Shown piece by piece: positions 2,740 through 28,924 of a stretch of 48,306 bases of DNA (position 1 is its first letter; each line of letters begins with the position of its first letter). Source of the stretch: Prasinococcaceae sp. CCMP 1430. Taxonomy: Eukaryota > Plantae > Prasinodermophyta. Location: NCBI GenBank assembly GCA_013416795.1, contig RQSC01001337.1:7593-55898 (forward strand), given 5' to 3'. A program made the position numbers and the translations under genes. Under the pieces are notes generated by a model. That model worked only from the letters and a program-made list of their open reading frames with translations. It made no database searches and was not told where the DNA came from.

Positions 2740-2982
2740 GGGCCGACGAGGCGACGGCGAGCGCGCGAGCGTGCGAGAGCGCAGCGACTCCGACTCGCGC
2801 CGGCACTGCTTGTGAGCGCGCGCGCCCCATTTTGATCATAACAATTCCAAATGAGCTGCTCGCAAGCGTGCACGGCACCGCGGCGGCTCGCGAGCGTGCG
2901 CTCGCACTGCGACACCTCGCGTGGTCGCAAGTATCTGTACACATTATTCATGATGCAAAATATGCCCCGCGCGCGGCATGGC

Positions 2983-3226
2983 TCAGGCGGCACCGGCACC
3001 CGGTGCGGCCACCTTGCGTGGCCGCCCGCGACCGCGCTTGACGGGCACGACCACCTCGGCGCCGGCTTCGACCTTGCCTGCGAGCCCCTTGGGAAGGCTG
3101 CCGGCCATGGCGGCGACGGAGAGCTTGCGCCGCTGCTGCGCCTGCTCGGCGGGGCTTGCGGTCGACGACGAAGCGGCGGCGCTGCCGCTCACGTACTCGC
3201 GCAGGACGCCCGAGCGTGTGGGCTGG

Positions 3227-3261
<35 letters not shown>

Positions 3262-5465
3262 AATGCGCTCGCGCGTGAGCGCGAAGGCATCGCCGATGTC
3301 TTCGAGCGTGTGCATGACGCCGTCCTCCAGGCCGTAGCGCAGACGCAGCACGTCGCGCTCACGCGGGGCCAGCGTGTTGAGCACACTCTCGATGTCCTCG
3401 CGCATCATCATCGACAGCGCGCCGCCGTCACCATCCTGGCTCTGCGCGTCCTCGGTCACCGCCTGGTCCATTATCGTCTGCGAGCGCCCCCCGTTGACGC
3501 TCGCGCTCGAGCCACCGCCGCCGCCGCGCCCTCCGATCTCCTGATCGAGGCTCATCGTGTCCTCCGCCGCCGCGAGCACGCTCTCGAGCTTGGTCTTGGG
3601 AACGCCCACCTCCTTGGCCAGCCACTGCGTGCTGGGCTCCACGCCCGTGCGCTCCGTCTCCTCCCGCCGAATGCGATTGACCCGCTGAAGAAGCTCCACG
3701 AGATGGACTGGCAGGCGGATGATGCGCCCCTGGTCCGCGAGCGCGCGCGTGACGCTCTGCCGCACCCACCAAGTGGCGTACGTCGAGAACTTGAAGCCCT
3801 TGGAGCCGTCGAACTTCTCGGCGCCGCGGATGAGCCCGAAGGTACCCTCGATGATGAGGTCCTCCAGCGTCAGCCCCTGCCCCTGGTAGCGCTTCGCCAC
3901 GCTGAACACAAGTCGCTGGTTCGCGTTGATCATGCGCTCGCGGCAGCGCGTGCCGTGCTCGAAGCGGGCGTGGAGCTCCTCGACACTCAGCTCAGCGTGC
4001 GCCGCCCACGACGCGTCGTCCAGGCGCGCGAAGGCCTCCTCGCGCAGCGCCCTCAGTTCGCGCCCTGCGCGCCCGCGCGCCGTGGGCTCGTCGTCTTCGT
4101 CGATCGCGCCGGCCCCCTTGGCCTTCGGAAGGAGGCCAACGGCGCGGCACGCGCGCAGGCGCGCCTTGCGCAGCCGCACCAGCTCTGCGATGCCCTGGCT
4201 GAGCTCCACCTCTTCCTGCGCCGTTAGCAAGCCGTCGTTCGACACGTTGGCCATGAACGCCTTGATGGGCTCGTTGTTCTGCTGAGAGACGGCGGAGCGA
4301 ACCTTGGCTGCCTGCTCCTCCTCGGCGGCCGTGAGCGGTCGCCGGTCTGCCACATTCGGCGACGGTGCGACGGCCACGGCGGCCACGCGCCCGCCACTGA
4401 GCGCGGGAGCGCGCCGGCGCTGCTGCGAGGCGGTCTTCCTGCCGCTTCGGCGCCGGCGCCCCACCGCACCGCCACCCGCACCACCAACACCCCCCCGCGC
4501 AGCCAAGCCGACCGGCAGGCCCACGCTACGCACCGCAGCGACGCGCGCTGCCTCCGCGTCAGCATCCGCCGCCGCGTGCTGTGCCTTCCCCGCGCCATCG
4601 CCGTCCTCCGCCACCGTCTCCTCCAGCTCGCGCGCATTGAGCGCGAGGCCCTCGGTCTCGACCGCCCCGATCAGAATGGTCAGCAGCGCGCCGCGCTCGG
4701 CCTCCTTGGCGGCCTTGGAGCGCGCGCTCAGGGAAGAGTCGATGGACTCGGCGGCGGCGGACACGTCCACGCCCGCCTGCTTCGACACGTGCCGCAGCTC
4801 TTCCAGGCCCATCGCCCGCAGCGGGCGCTGGTACAGGGGAAGCTCGCCGCGCGCGACCAGCACCGTCTCCGCGAGGTCGCCCTTGATACCCGCGGCGGGC
4901 ACCGAGGCCTCGGCGAGCGCTGAGCGCAGGTCTCCCATTGAGACGCGCAGGAGCGCAGCGAAGGACTTCGGCAGGTGCGCGAGCGGGCCGCGCTCATCGG
5001 GGGGGAGCACCACGAAGTCGGGGAGGTCGTCTGCCGCCTTTGGCGCCCGGGCGCGCGCCGACCGCGCGGGCCCTCCGCGCACCGCCGCCGGCAGCTTGAA
5101 GTCGTCGTCTGCGTCGCCATCCGGGCGCGACTGTGGCCTCGCCGCTCCGTCCTGCGCCACCGCCCTGTCCACCTCAGCGTACGCCCGCATCGCCGCCTGC
5201 GCCTCCGCGAGAAGCGATGCAATGTCATCCGCTCCCGCTCCCGCCGCCGACGCGTCCGCGCCTGACGCCTGCTCGGCCGCGTCGCGCGCGCCGCCCGGCA
5301 CCGCCACCTCGCCCGCGTCGAGCTCGAGGTCGGTCGCCCAAGACGCCAGCGCGTGCGCACTGCTGCCGCCGCGCAGCGCGGGCGCGGCCTTCTTCACCTT
5401 GGACGAGCGCCGCACGCGCGCCCGCGCGCCCGCTTCGCCGCCCGCGGCGCTGCACCATGTCGCAG
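2983..5465 (-). CDS. SIG1: Nucleus-encoded plastid sigma-70 factor (SIG/RpoD-like), main 3' exon; upstream exons in or beyond the gap 5517-6482
   Basis: Region 2 ([16 protein letters not shown]...[26 protein letters not shown]), region 3 (GRIIRLPVH) and region 4 HTH ([12 protein letters not shown]...[28 protein letters not shown]). The acceptor CTGCAG at 5466-5471 is preceded by a polypyrimidine tract. The SIG1 versus other SIG subtype is not resolved. Confidence 0.93.
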
Positions 5466-6653
5466 CTGCAGGGACGGAGAGAATGGGGAAGGGGGGGGGG
5501 GGGGGGGGGGGGGGGGNNNNNNNNNNNNNNNNNNNNNNNNNNNNNNNNNNNNNNNNNNNNNNNNNNNNNNNNNNNNNNNNNNNNNNNNNNNNNNNNNNNN
5601 NNNNNNNNNNNNNNNNNNNNNNNNNNNNNNNNNNNNNNNNNNNNNNNNNNNNNNNNNNNNNNNNNNNNNNNNNNNNNNNNNNNNNNNNNNNNNNNNNNNN
5701 NNNNNNNNNNNNNNNNNNNNNNNNNNNNNNNNNNNNNNNNNNNNNNNNNNNNNNNNNNNNNNNNNNNNNNNNNNNNNNNNNNNNNNNNNNNNNNNNNNNN
5801 NNNNNNNNNNNNNNNNNNNNNNNNNNNNNNNNNNNNNNNNNNNNNNNNNNNNNNNNNNNNNNNNNNNNNNNNNNNNNNNNNNNNNNNNNNNNNNNNNNNN
5901 NNNNNNNNNNNNNNNNNNNNNNNNNNNNNNNNNNNNNNNNNNNNNNNNNNNNNNNNNNNNNNNNNNNNNNNNNNNNNNNNNNNNNNNNNNNNNNNNNNNN
6001 NNNNNNNNNNNNNNNNNNNNNNNNNNNNNNNNNNNNNNNNNNNNNNNNNNNNNNNNNNNNNNNNNNNNNNNNNNNNNNNNNNNNNNNNNNNNNNNNNNNN
6101 NNNNNNNNNNNNNNNNNNNNNNNNNNNNNNNNNNNNNNNNNNNNNNNNNNNNNNNNNNNNNNNNNNNNNNNNNNNNNNNNNNNNNNNNNNNNNNNNNNNN
6201 NNNNNNNNNNNNNNNNNNNNNNNNNNNNNNNNNNNNNNNNNNNNNNNNNNNNNNNNNNNNNNNNNNNNNNNNNNNNNNNNNNNNNNNNNNNNNNNNNNNN
6301 NNNNNNNNNNNNNNNNNNNNNNNNNNNNNNNNNNNNNNNNNNNNNNNNNNNNNNNNNNNNNNNNNNNNNNNNNNNNNNNNNNNNNNNNNNNNNNNNNNNN
6401 NNNNNNNNNNNNNNNNNNNNNNNNNNNNNNNNNNNNNNNNNNNNNNNNNNNNNNNNNNNNNNNNNNNNNNNNNNNNNNNNNNCGCGCGGCCCGCGCGCGC
6501 GCGCGAGCGAGCGAGGGCTCCCGAGCCCCCGTGCGCGCGCGCGCGCAACGCGCCTGCTTTTTAACATCCTCGTCGGCCGCGTGCTTCCACACCTGCTTCC
6601 ACGCCCCCAGGCTCAAACTGACCTTCAATCTTTCGCGTGCGTCCCGACCTCAC

Positions 6654-24793: not shown

Positions 24794-27700
24794 CTAGTCG
24801 CCTTGCTCACCGATCGAAAAGAGCCGGCGCAGGTCCTGTGTTCTCGCCTTGGCGGCTTCCGCGGGGGACAGCTTCCGCAACGCCCCGGAGCCGATAGCCG
24901 CCTTGGCCTCCTGCAGCTCCAACAGCTTCTCTTCGAGAGTGTCCTCGGTCACTGCGCGCCCGCGAGGAAATACGTCAGTGTGCGACCGGGGAGCGCCGAG
25001 CACGCTTTGCGGCGTGAATGGCTTGAGCGGCTAAGCGCCGTGCGCGCGCGCGCCCGAATGCGAAGGGCGCTGCATCAGGGATGACGCACCGAATCTCGTG
25101 ACCGTGACTGGGAGCGTCTGCCCAAGGCGATGGACTCTATCCCAGGCTTGCGCTTCCACCGCCTCGTTCCACCACAGGTCCATCATAAACACCCGATTGG
25201 CCGCAGTGAGGTTGAGGCCTTGTCCGCCAGCACGCGTAGAAACCAGCAGCACGCGCGCAGTACCGTCTTGCAGCGCATGCATCGCGGCTGCACGCTGTTC
25301 GGCAGTGCGCGAGCCATCGATGCGCGCCGTGGTCCAGCGCTCGGATTTTAGGCTGGCCTCAATGATGTCCAAAAAGCTAGTGAACTGGCTGAAAACCACA
25401 GCCCGCTTGTCAGGCCCCTCCGCACGCATGCCTTCTAGGCACTCGAGAAGCGCCGCGACCTTCGGCGGCGTGGTCTCGCTCGCCGCCGGAGGGCCTTCTG
25501 CTCCCGTCCCCGCCCCAGCGGAGCCGTCGTTGGCCACGCGTCGCTTCTCGAGCTCGGCAATAGATAGCAGGTCGCCGAGGCGGAAGTCCTGCCGGCACAT
25601 TGGACAGCGCGCCGTTTGCTGCTTGCGGCGCGGGTCGACGTCCATGACTCTCATGATACAAGGCTTGCAGAACGAGTGGGAGCAATTTCGCAAAATCCGA
25701 ACCTCAACATCGGACTGCGGCTGCAGACAGATGGCGCACTCGAAGTCATCCTCGCCGTCATCGAGGGCGCTCTTAAGCCGCGTAAATAGGTTTGCTACTT
25801 CCTCTTTGGAGAGATCCGGGGCTCCACCGCTCGCGCGGCGTGCCTTACCTGCAGCGGCGAGCATTTTTGCCGCAACGTCCAGGCGCTCGGGAGGCACCAA
25901 AGAGCGCGCGCAGCACGCCTGGCGCAGTCGCATGATGCATTCGAGAATGGACATGTAGTGCTCTGTCGCAGTGCCCAACTCAATCGCAGCGGCGATGGCC
26001 ACCCTCGCGCTGTCGAAGAGCGTCGAATAACTTTCGCGGTGCGGCGGGTCGAACACAACCTTCTGGACGACGATGGTCTTTGGAGGCAGTTCAGCTCCCA
26101 GCACGCTCTTCGGCCTGCGCAGGCTGATGGTCTTAAGCAGGAGCCGCAGGCGCGCCAGTCCGGCTCGGTCACCTTCGCGGATCGGGCGCGCAACCGCGCG
26201 ATTGAAGATCTGAGGCTCGTTGAGTGGCTGAGCTCCAAGGAAGGCCAGAACGCCGTACACATCCCCCGCGCTGTTCTGAATCGGCGTTCCAGTGAGCGCC
26301 CACCGCAGGCGGGCGTGCAGGGCACAGACCGCCTTGAAAGCCTTGGTTTGCCTGTTGCGTACAGTATGCGCCTCATCGAGAACGGCTCGGTGCCAACGCA
26401 CGGACAGAACGCCTGGTGGTGGCGCCGGCTTTGCGCCGAGAGAGCACGCGTCCAGGTAAGCCTCGTGGTCGGCCAGCTCTCCACTGAGGGTGCTGTACGA
26501 GGTGATCACCACGTCAGCTTCGCGCAGCCTAGGCGCGAGCGCATGCCTGCCCGGTCCGTGCCAGACCACAACTGTCAGAGTACCGTGAGCGATGTGCTCC
26601 TCTATCTGCGTCGCCCAATTTTCCAAGACGGACACAGGCGCGACGATCAGCGTGCCTCGGGCACACGCAGCGGCTGGGGCTGTCGTAAGCCGTTTGGCCC
26701 TCCCCGTGCTTTGAGCGCTCGTCTTTCGTCGCTTTGCCGTCGGCTGCAGCTCCCTAAGCCGCGGCGCTACAGCATTGCCAGCGTAGAGCGCCGCCGTCCC
26801 CCCCGCCGCGTCGAGCGCGGCCCACGCACGCGCGGCGAGAGCGTCCTTGTTCCCGGATTTGCTCACGCACGACACTACACACAATTCGCGTAGCTGATTC
26901 ACCTTGAGCAAGAGCAGGTCACGCTCTGTAGAGAGCGCGCGTCCCCACAGTTCTCGCGCACGGTCAAGCATCTGCACCCACGTTTTGATGAACGGGGCAT
27001 TAGACTGACACTCAGATGCACCCTCGAGGAGCGACGCCGGCCCACCAACCTTCGCGAGGGCAGCCCACGCGCGCGCGGCCAGAGCGTCCTTGTTGCCAGA
27101 CTTTGACACAGCCGACACCTGACAGAGCGTGCGAAGTTGCGCCAGCGTGAGTGCAGTCTGAAGGTCGCACGAGTCGGATGCCACTCGTCCACAAACCTCG
27201 CGTACTACTGAGAACATCTCGCGCCATGTGCTGGCAAATGCGGGCGCAAAATTCGAAAGAGCCAGCTCCGACGAAGTCGTGGCAGTGGGCACAGGGGCAT
27301 CTTCTTCGCTGCCCTTCGCGTCTGCGATAGCAGCAGCGTGACCAGGAGTCTGAGCGGCTTCGCTCAGAGTGGCCGAGGGGCACTCGTAGACCACACCTGT
27401 GGGCGGGTTGGACAGAATGACTGCAAGCGTTTGTAAGGTCTTGCCGTTGCCCATGTCGTCTGCGAGGAGACCTCCAAATACCGGCGATGGCCGCGCTGTG
27501 GTCGAGGTACTGGTGACAGAGTTGTAAAAAACCTGCCTGCCCAACTCTAGTCGCTCTTCAAAGAATGTCGGCAGGACGCTCGGGGCCTGCCGCTCGCGTG
27601 AGAGCATCCAAGCAACGCCTCTTTTCTGGTGCTCTCGAAGGGATGACGTGAGTTGCGGGGGCTCGACGAAACTGTCGGTGGATGCGCCCTCCTGCTCAGA

Positions 27701-28924
27701 AGCCAGCTTGTCGAAGAGTTCATCCAGTTCCCTTTGAGCACGGGCAGGGTTGAACTCGTACGAGACGCCCAAGGCGCCGCGCCCGCCGCCGCCCTCGGTG
27801 CTATCATATGCGCCGCTCCCGCTCGGCCCGCCGGGCAGTGCCGCGCCCCCCCTCCGCAACACATGGCCAGCCAGCCGTAGATTTTCCACAACCCACGACA
27901 TATCGCCCGGCGTCCCGTACAGCGCGAGCGTGACGGGCATCGTGAAGATATTGCTCAGATCTCGCGGGATCGTGGCCTCCACCCGCGGCCCCCCGGACGC
28001 GGTATGGTCCAAAATCCGGCGCAGCGCCGCGGCGGTGCCGCGCTTGATGTGGCCAACCTGCTTTCCGTCGAAGTTATCCACGCGGACGGCATTCGGATCA
28101 TACGGATTGTTCGGCTCTCTGACGAGGGTGACGTACTCACCCGCGTGGGCAATGCCCTCATAGTATCGGCAGCCTACCACAGCCGCTTCGAATTGCCCGT
28201 AGAAGACCTCGCGCGAGAACTCATCCCCGAGGTCGTCTGCAGCCATATGCTGCGTCTCGTTGACGGCGGCATCCGCCCGCGCGCTCACGCCTGCAGCAAG
28301 CGCGGCAGGCGCAGGCGAGCGTAACGACGCCGAGGGCGGCAGAGCTGCGGGCGCAGGTGCAGGTGGCTCCGCAGGCTCCGCGCCAAAAGTGAGCGAGGAG
28401 CATTGGGGCGACCGCTGCCGTATGGCCTCGCGGATGGACGAGGGCAGCCGCCCGTACCCTGGATGTTGGCCACGCGGAGCGCGCGCGTGTGCGAATTAGC
28501 GCGAAGGAGAGGCAGTGACATCGCGTGCGCGATCGAGAGCGTGTTCGCACGCATCGCACGCACCCTCGAAGTTCTTTGGGTTGCCGTTGCGGTGGCACGC
28601 AAAGTGCCGCCATTGGAAGTACTCGCCCCAGTCGCCATGCGCCTTCAGCAGCTCGCGCAAAAAATGGCGCCAGCGGTCAGCGTCGGTGCGCAGGGACGCC
28701 GTATGTGCGTGCGTGGCGGCGTTTCCACCCTATGCGTGCGCGCGTGTTTGTGTAGGTGTGCGGGGCGGTGTGGGATGGGGTAAGGGAGGGAACTCGCACA
28801 GCGTGCTCCCGGCCCCGCTACGCACCTCAGTGCCCACGCGCACCGAGCCGCGCGCAATATTGGACCCGCACGAGCGGCAGCGCGCGCGGCCGCTCGCCGC
28901 GAGCTCCACGCGCTTGCGTGGCAT
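24794..28924 (-). CDS. HLTF/RAD5-like SNF2 helicase-E3 ligase: zf-PARP-like finger + HIRAN + SNF2_N (two SAP-motif inserts) + RING + helicase C; about 1234 aa
   Basis: Exons 28924-28826, 28642-28564, 28458-25090 and 24951-24794 total 3705 nt in frame. HIRAN (VVGCRYY...LVREPNNPYDPNAVRV...QVGHI), GGLLADDMGNGKT, VLDEAH, ALTGTPIQN, RING CAIC...CSHSFCKPC...CPMC, VVFSQF and QAWDRVHRLGQ. Confidence 0.9.

Follow-up and report, generated by a model that had tools for sequence, protein, structure and literature searches.

A predicted SAP-like module in the N-terminal extension of a Prasinoderma plastid sigma-70 factor

The sigma factor gene and its transcript

Prasinoderma is a member of the earliest-diverging green lineage, and its plastid transcription machinery bears on the open question of how the cyanobacterial RNA polymerase of plastids gained eukaryotic accessory parts, among which the SAP domain recurs (pTAC3, PEPS1). 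This domain, known from SAF-A/B, Acinus, PIAS, Ku70 and plant ARP endonuclease, is a degenerate bipartite pattern of about 35 residues. We analyzed a stretch of 48,306 nucleotides (the window) from Prasinococcaceae sp. CCMP 1430 (assembly GCA_013416795.1, contig RQSC01001337.1, positions 7,593 to 55,898), a scaffold of 69% GC containing assembly gaps, and examined a sigma-70 gene on its minus strand whose product carries a probable, divergent SAP-type element in its N-terminal extension. A SAP-like module together with an AT hook on a sigma-70 factor is an architecture found neither among the best 120 of 7996 relatives of the sigma domain nor in a literature search.

The minus-strand open reading frame (ORF) running from 5514 to 2986 translates into 843 residues. 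A word-index search identified a UniRef entry of 831 residues from Prasinoderma coloniale with 100% identity to this translation (P0001, annotated as an RNA polymerase sigma-70 domain-containing protein), and the same search recovered an ortholog of 817 residues from Logan assemblies (P0002). For the N-terminal region it returned nothing beyond P0001 itself and this one ortholog. Residues are numbered here as in P0001, which corresponds to the number in the ORF minus 12.

The transcript evidence consists of RNA runs stored as contigs, which show presence and not expression level. A contig of 2621 nt from a culture run (X1) aligns to positions 2942-5467 with zero differences and zero gaps, and because the RNA contigs are unbroken over this interval the SAP-like motif and the sigma domain lie on one mRNA and in one exon. 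Past 5467, X1 continues for 93 letters absent from the window and a marine metatranscriptome contig (X2) has the same loose end; these loose ends comprise 74-93 letters that are found nowhere in the window, and the reverse complement of the letters past 5467 terminates in ATGGCGGCGAG. Since the contigs run into absent letters where a pyrimidine tract and a CAG stand at 5466-5468, exon 1 (the 5' untranslated region and ATGGCGGCGAGAG, with the start codon) falls in the assembly gap at 5517-6482 and is therefore missing from the assembly, and ORF 2986-5465 represents the second exon of the nuclear P. coloniale gene that encodes the plastid sigma-70 factor. The protein begins with MAARAATWCS, as in P0001, and the N-terminus of this product of a spliced nuclear gene is rich in Ala, Arg and Ser and resembles a transit peptide by composition. 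Near-identical transcripts (95-99% identity, mostly synonymous differences) are also present in marine metatranscriptomes from two studies (runs X2-X4 and X6-X8), and Prasinoderma-like populations therefore express the sigma gene in the sea.

The host protein is a cyanobacterial-type RpoD (group 1/2 sigma-70) with an N-terminal extension of ~400 residues. Pfam models place the sigma-70 core within ORF residues 429-764, with matches to region 2 (PF04542, 1.4e-19), region 4 (PF04545, 8.9e-18) and region 3 (PF04539, 6.5e-08) and a weak match to region 1.2 (PF00140, E 0.01, under the cut-off). The best NCBIfam matches were to the cyanobacterial RpoD models PRK07406 (1.3e-91) and TIGR02997 (3.4e-82), both under their equivalog cut-offs. 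The features of the locus are collected in Table 1.

Table 1. Features of the sigma factor gene, in window coordinates
Feature	Position	Strand	Remarks
Exon 2 coding sequence	2986..5465	-	P0001 residues 5-831; ORF, 100% UniRef match, RNA contigs over 2942-5467
Stop codon	2983-2985	-	
Intron 1, 3' end	5466..5516	-	Pyrimidine tract (26 C, then TTCCCCATTCTCTCCGTCCCT) and CAG acceptor at 5466-5468; contigs X1 and X2 leave the window sequence at 5467; sequence read directly
Most conserved block of the N-terminal extension	4969..5058	-	P0001 141-170; 80% identity to P0002, dN/dS 0.13
Motif 1, SAP-like helix-extended loop-helix (predicted)	4834..4968	-	P0001 171-215; SAP core 4861-4944
Motif 2, possible second unit of the same class	4603..4824	-	P0001 219-292; helix, variable loop of 10-19 residues, long helix
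Low-complexity linker	4279..4602	-	P0001 293-400; acidic, then Gly-rich, then strongly basic; pI about 11.8
Sigma-70 core	3223..4230	-	Region 1.2 4180-4230 (weak), region 2 3724-3933, region 3 3526-3696, region 4 3223-3384
C-terminal AT-hook-like motif	3007..3039	-	Pfam AT_hook 15.0 bits, E 0.022

Pattern, conservation and predicted fold of the SAP-like motif

An earlier note on this DNA, made from the sequence alone, had proposed that the N-terminal extension holds a SAP-like motif followed by a second helix-extension-helix segment. Its peptides are correctly placed on the minus strand (LLRVSMGDL... starting at 4953, MGLEELRHV at 4812 and ERGALLTIL ending at 4672), and the spacing that it described for the SAP-like motif (Leu at 1 and 5, hydrophobic at 10, Gly at 14, Lys at 16, Leu at 19 and hydrophobic at 23) is exact when counted from L184 of P0001. 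A stricter pattern for the SAP core, h.h..h...h....h...G.[KR]..h...h, represents the Pfam SAP consensus positions that are hydrophobic (4, 6, 9, 13, 18, 27 and 31) together with Gly22 and Lys/Arg24. Six-frame translation of the window comprises 96,608 codons, and among them this pattern matches at 4861-4944 (P0001 179-206) alone; P0002 matches it at the identical residues 179-206. When the 400-residue extension was shuffled 20,000 times, the pattern occurred in 5e-5 of the shuffles, a figure that is somewhat post hoc because the pattern was derived from the general consensus after the sequence had been seen.

The extension is conserved unevenly between the two orthologs, with identities of 41% over residues 1-140, 80% over 141-170, 76% over motif 1 (171-215) and 55% over 216-292. 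The ratio of nonsynonymous to synonymous substitution rates (dN/dS) is 0.13, 0.33 and 0.54 for the last three of these segments and 0.22 for the sigma core. Among the coding variants in the marine metatranscriptome contigs, 14 of 16 are synonymous third-position changes; both variants that fall in motif 1 are of this kind, as is the one at L225 of motif 2. The low dN/dS and the synonymous variants indicate that the region is coding and constrained and not a chance reading frame in GC-rich DNA; motif 1 is a translated, expressed and selectively maintained part of the sigma N-terminal extension. The block at 141-170, directly upstream of the SAP-like core, matches no family and may belong to the same domain or be a separate short motif.

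Structure predictions for motif 1 are divided between methods. A structure search of the ESM Atlas with residues 168-216 of the P0001 model returned SAP-type domains in 10 of 10 rows (SAP, SAP_RNF34_RFFL, Ku70 and SDE2), with template modeling (TM) scores of 0.69-0.80 by query over 41-49 residues, and the language-model feature matches for these residues were named SAP, helix-extended loop-helix (HeH)/LEM and Rho_N. For the longer segment of residues 165-295, eight of the ten nearest clusters carry PF02037, in addition to a Ku70 cluster. With residues 219-285 the neighbors were mixed, which shows that a helical fragment does not by itself draw SAP rows from this search. AlphaFold2 models were built from an alignment of two sequences. 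In a model of the 133-residue module (mean predicted local distance difference test, pLDDT, 60) the secondary structure is helix, loop and helix where SAP expects them: the helices of motif 1 span 22-31 and 43-50 and flank an 11-residue loop bearing the conserved G.K. Its atlas neighbors were SAP, Rho_N or SAP_RNF34 in seven of ten rows, mostly aligned to motif 2, and a PDB-wide structural list for it includes the Hcc-1 SAP at a Z score (4.2-4.7) within the noise range of helical models; Foldseek against the PDB with this model found nothing. Motif 1 modeled alone has a helix at 6-25, a loop at 26-36 and a helix at 37-44, at low confidence (mean pLDDT 62.6). Across the two AlphaFold2 models the pLDDT of motif 1 is 50-70.

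Our assessment is that motif 1 probably represents a divergent HeH domain of SAP type. The case is partly supported: it rests on the pattern, the conservation and one family of structure predictors; the family profiles do not confirm it, and AlphaFold2 does so only partly. The SAP fold suggested by the earlier note is favored by the placement of motif 1 among SAP domains by ESM and ESMFold, and against it are the silence of Pfam and the AlphaFold2 model of motif 1 alone.

The second segment is the less certain of the two. Motif 2 consists of two conserved helices separated by a loop that varies between P0001 and P0002, and its first helix has an AlphaFold2 pLDDT of about 79. The PDB structural list for the 133-residue module includes the Rho N-domain (1a62, Z 4.7), the CDNF C-domain (9i5y, Z 4.5), the emerin LEM domain (2odc, Z 4.2) and FAN1 462-516 (Z 4.2), all with values within the noise range of helical models. 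In the ESM model only one of ten rows for residues 219-285 is HeH/LEM, the others being mixed. The proposed second segment is therefore HeH-like in the AlphaFold2 model, but barely so in the ESM model and without a Pfam match; we regard it as possible that motif 2 is an HeH unit with an unusually long loop. A candidate internal repeat between motif 1 and motif 2 was rejected, because the hhalign match was an artefact of a 9-residue overlap between the two alignments and is no evidence of a repeat.

Weighing DNA contact against other roles

The arrangement of the protein suggests how such a module could act. The SAP-like motif follows the conserved 30-residue block and precedes the less certain HeH-like unit, and a flexible linker of ~110 residues, which includes a very basic patch, would connect the pair to sigma region 1.2. 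At the end of the protein stands an AT-hook-like motif. This motif, KRGRGRPRK, is present in both orthologs (P0002 residues 802-814) and scores 15.0-15.1 bits against AT_hook (PF02178; E about 0.02), under the 17.4 cut-off. Module, basic linker and AT hook could together provide the sigma factor, and through it the holoenzyme, with extra, sequence-unspecific contacts to the AT-rich DNA of the plastid, either around promoters or within the nucleoid, a role that is filled in trans by the SAP-bearing subunits PAP1/pTAC3 in land plants and PEPS1 in Chlamydomonas. We give an even chance to this combined reading, in which residues 171-215 form a divergent SAP-type fold in a maintained sigma extension and module, linker and AT hook supply additional contacts with plastid DNA. 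DNA binding by the module itself appears somewhat doubtful. A nucleoid or DNA-anchoring role, as the earlier note proposed, would be in keeping with a basic linker next to the module, an AT hook at the C-terminus and the presence of SAP in pTAC3/PAP1 and PEPS1. As a separate observation, 27 of the best 120 sigma relatives have a conserved N-terminal AT-hook-like motif, TGIT..(K/R)RGRPKG(A/S)(R/K), at residues about 75-275 (carriers include P0020, P0024, P0026, P0037, P0041 and P0069; one carrier comes from Pelagococcus subviridis). Algal sigma factors therefore seem commonly to bear AT hooks, placed N-terminally, unlike the C-terminal one of Prasinoderma.

Several results weigh against a DNA-binding SAP domain. 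The Pfam check called for by the earlier note (SAP PF02037, Rho_N PF07498, LEM and HeH) gave no match at E<=10 in either P0001 or P0002, whole or in pieces. As a positive control, the Pfam SAP model finds two SAP repeats in a helicase encoded within the window, at exactly the gathering threshold of 23.9 bits, and does not report motif 1. Alignment of motif 1 and motif 2 to these helicase SAP domains by hhalign was not significant (probability 0.3 in one of these comparisons). Only two sequences of the module exist, so that every profile and alignment is shallow. The charge of motif 1 is also atypical, with five Lys or Arg and five Asp or Glu residues for a net of 0, so that by charge count it does not have the basic surface typical of DNA-binding SAP domains; K199 alone is retained of the usual basic SAP positions. 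The module as a whole ranges from neutral to acidic (isoelectric point, pI, 5.1-7.1), and for some HeH folds, such as LEM and the CDNF/MANF C-domain, the binding partner is a protein and not DNA. On the structural side, the ESM Atlas model of P0001 has a whole-protein mean pLDDT of only 0.55, the ESM feature scores of 0.79-0.81 are not significant alone as shuffled proteins reach that range one third of the time, and the AlphaFold2 model of motif 1 alone had no SAP or HeH neighbor in the atlas or the PDB (all Z below 3.6).

Other searches were blank. An exhaustive profile search with residues 160-292 against 1.84 billion representatives yielded only P0001 itself and repetitive false matches (P0003, P0004), and PDB sequence searches (queries A2, A3 and A5) gave nothing meaningful. 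The PDB blanks say little for a domain of ~35 residues, because the Pfam-positive helicase SAP control (A4) was likewise blank. The helicase is an HLTF/Rad5-like HIRAN-SNF2-RING protein (ORF 25034-28288) with two tandem SAP repeats inserted in its SNF2 domain (26801-27172, minus strand).

As the module is neutral or acidic and some HeH folds bind proteins, a regulatory docking site or a region 1.1-like module is a serious rival to the DNA-contact reading, and we assign it a real but minor share of the probability. Under this explanation residues 141-292 would be a lineage-specific helical module kept for a reason other than DNA binding, for example because a kinase, an anti-sigma-like regulator or a polymerase-associated protein docks there, or because it stands in for the acidic autoinhibitory region 1.1, and its SAP likeness would be at most a shared small fold; these variants share that same modest probability among them. 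The pI of the module resembles region 1.1 and is unlike typical SAP domains. Pfam and NCBIfam scans of whole proteins and pieces of both orthologs found no Sigma70_r1_1 match, and the cyanobacterial RpoD profile aligns only from position 69. The most conserved part of the extension (141-170) lies outside the SAP core, the Pfam SAP model and the AlphaFold2 model of motif 1 do not recover the domain, and protein-binding LEM and CDNF C-domains stand among the HeH-class PDB neighbors. This explanation does not readily account for an ESM structure search of 168-216 that gives SAP-type domains only, nor for a conserved SAP spacing that is exact down to the G.K turn, and no region 1.1 structure is prominent in the PDB list.

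The resemblance could also be the chance fit of an amphipathic stretch rich in Ala, Leu and Arg, in a genome of 69% GC, to a short and loose motif within a region that is mostly disordered linker. The brevity and degeneracy of the SAP pattern, the lack of a profile match, the low pLDDT in both AlphaFold2 models and an exhaustive search that produced repetitive junk in place of relatives would all be consistent with this, but the pattern is unique among the six-frame codons and rare in shuffles, its key positions are identical in an ortholog that is only 41% identical over the first 140 residues, dN/dS is 0.33, and the ESM neighbors are uniformly SAP where those of the adjacent segment are mixed. 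We therefore consider chance quite improbable. For motif 2 we consider it very unlikely that the segment is a degenerate Cro/C1 (XRE) helix-turn-helix (HTH) instead of an HeH unit: a weak hmmsearch match (query A5) to the anti-CRISPR-associated HTH protein Aca2 (7vjo_B) and one ESM atlas row for residues 219-285 (HTH_26, TM 0.52) suggest it, but the Aca2 E-value of 0.94 is not significant, the would-be recognition helix is the least conserved stretch of motif 2 and is Gly-rich in P0002, and the AlphaFold2 neighbors are mostly Rho_N/SAP.

Distribution and comparison with known systems

The 120 sigma relatives surveyed include proteins from Sphagnum, Marchantia, Riccia, Micromonas, Mesostigma, Chlorokybus, Pelagococcus and cyanobacteria. 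None of them has a precomputed Pfam SAP or Rho_N domain, in agreement with the statement of the earlier note that bacterial sigma-70 factors lack SAP, and none matches the SAP-core pattern. An unfiltered hmmsearch of the module against these relatives gave nothing above 5 bits, and the best two (P0063 and P0066) were without the SAP pattern on inspection. The motif is conserved in P0002 and has no other carrier among these 120, and the module appears confined to Prasinoderma as far as the present data go. A literature search found no description of a SAP-sigma fusion or of a Prasinoderma sigma factor.

If the SAP-like module and AT hook act in cis as proposed, they would constitute a simpler route to extra unspecific DNA contacts for the holoenzyme, and, given the predicted fold, SAP would be joined to the chloroplast RNA polymerase in a third way. 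If the module does not bind DNA, it would still be a conserved and unannotated domain of a key regulator. A further-reaching version, which we consider unlikely, is that SAP-type elements were recruited to plastid RNA polymerases at least three separate times (PAP1/pTAC3, PEPS1 and the Prasinodermophyta sigma factor) and that the SAP pair and AT hook in cis allow this sigma to anchor on its own to upstream DNA or to the nucleoid, in a manner comparable to the contact between the C-terminal domain of the alpha subunit and its UP element.

Compared with the SAP domain (PF02037), motif 1 shares the hydrophobic spacing, the invariant Gly and following Lys between two helices, and ESMFold-based neighbors that are all SAP-type; it differs in scoring below Pfam reporting, in having consensus positions 16, 23 and 30 occupied by non-basic residues, and in an AlphaFold2 model that does not reproduce the match. 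Within the HeH class, motif 2, taken with its long helix, can be superposed on Rho 1-47 (1a62, root-mean-square deviation 2.4 over 46 residues) and on the emerin LEM domain (47 residues), and Rho_N families dominate the atlas neighbors of the AlphaFold2 model. The inter-helix loop of motif 2 is longer and poorly conserved in comparison with Rho_N, LEM and HeH domains, whose Pfam models it does not match.

Among sigma factors, the Prasinoderma protein resembles those of plastids (SIG1-6 of plants, RPOD of Chlamydomonas) and the cyanobacterial group 1/2 sigma-70 factors in regions 1.2-4, with 40-49% identity, and it shares with other plastid sigma factors a long N-terminal extension that is not conserved. 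None of the surveyed relatives has a counterpart of the conserved 141-292 module. Close parallels are provided by accessory subunits of the plastid polymerase. In agreement with the SAP domain that the earlier note stated for this land-plant protein, PAP1/pTAC3 appears in a published list as DNA-binding and as bearing SAP (PMC4080259), and Chlamydomonas PEPS1 is reported to have four N-terminal SAP domains, of which a SAP fragment binds 16S promoter DNA in an electrophoretic mobility shift assay (preprint 10.64898/2026.06.23.732312; Prasinoderma lies outside the survey of that study). The Prasinoderma module is without sequence homology to either protein. The likeness is that a SAP-type element is tied to the bacterial-type RNA polymerase of the plastid, in Prasinoderma by prediction only; the difference is that in PAP1/pTAC3 and PEPS1 the SAP domains reside on separate, stably bound accessory subunits, whereas in Prasinoderma the element would be fused in cis to an exchangeable sigma factor.

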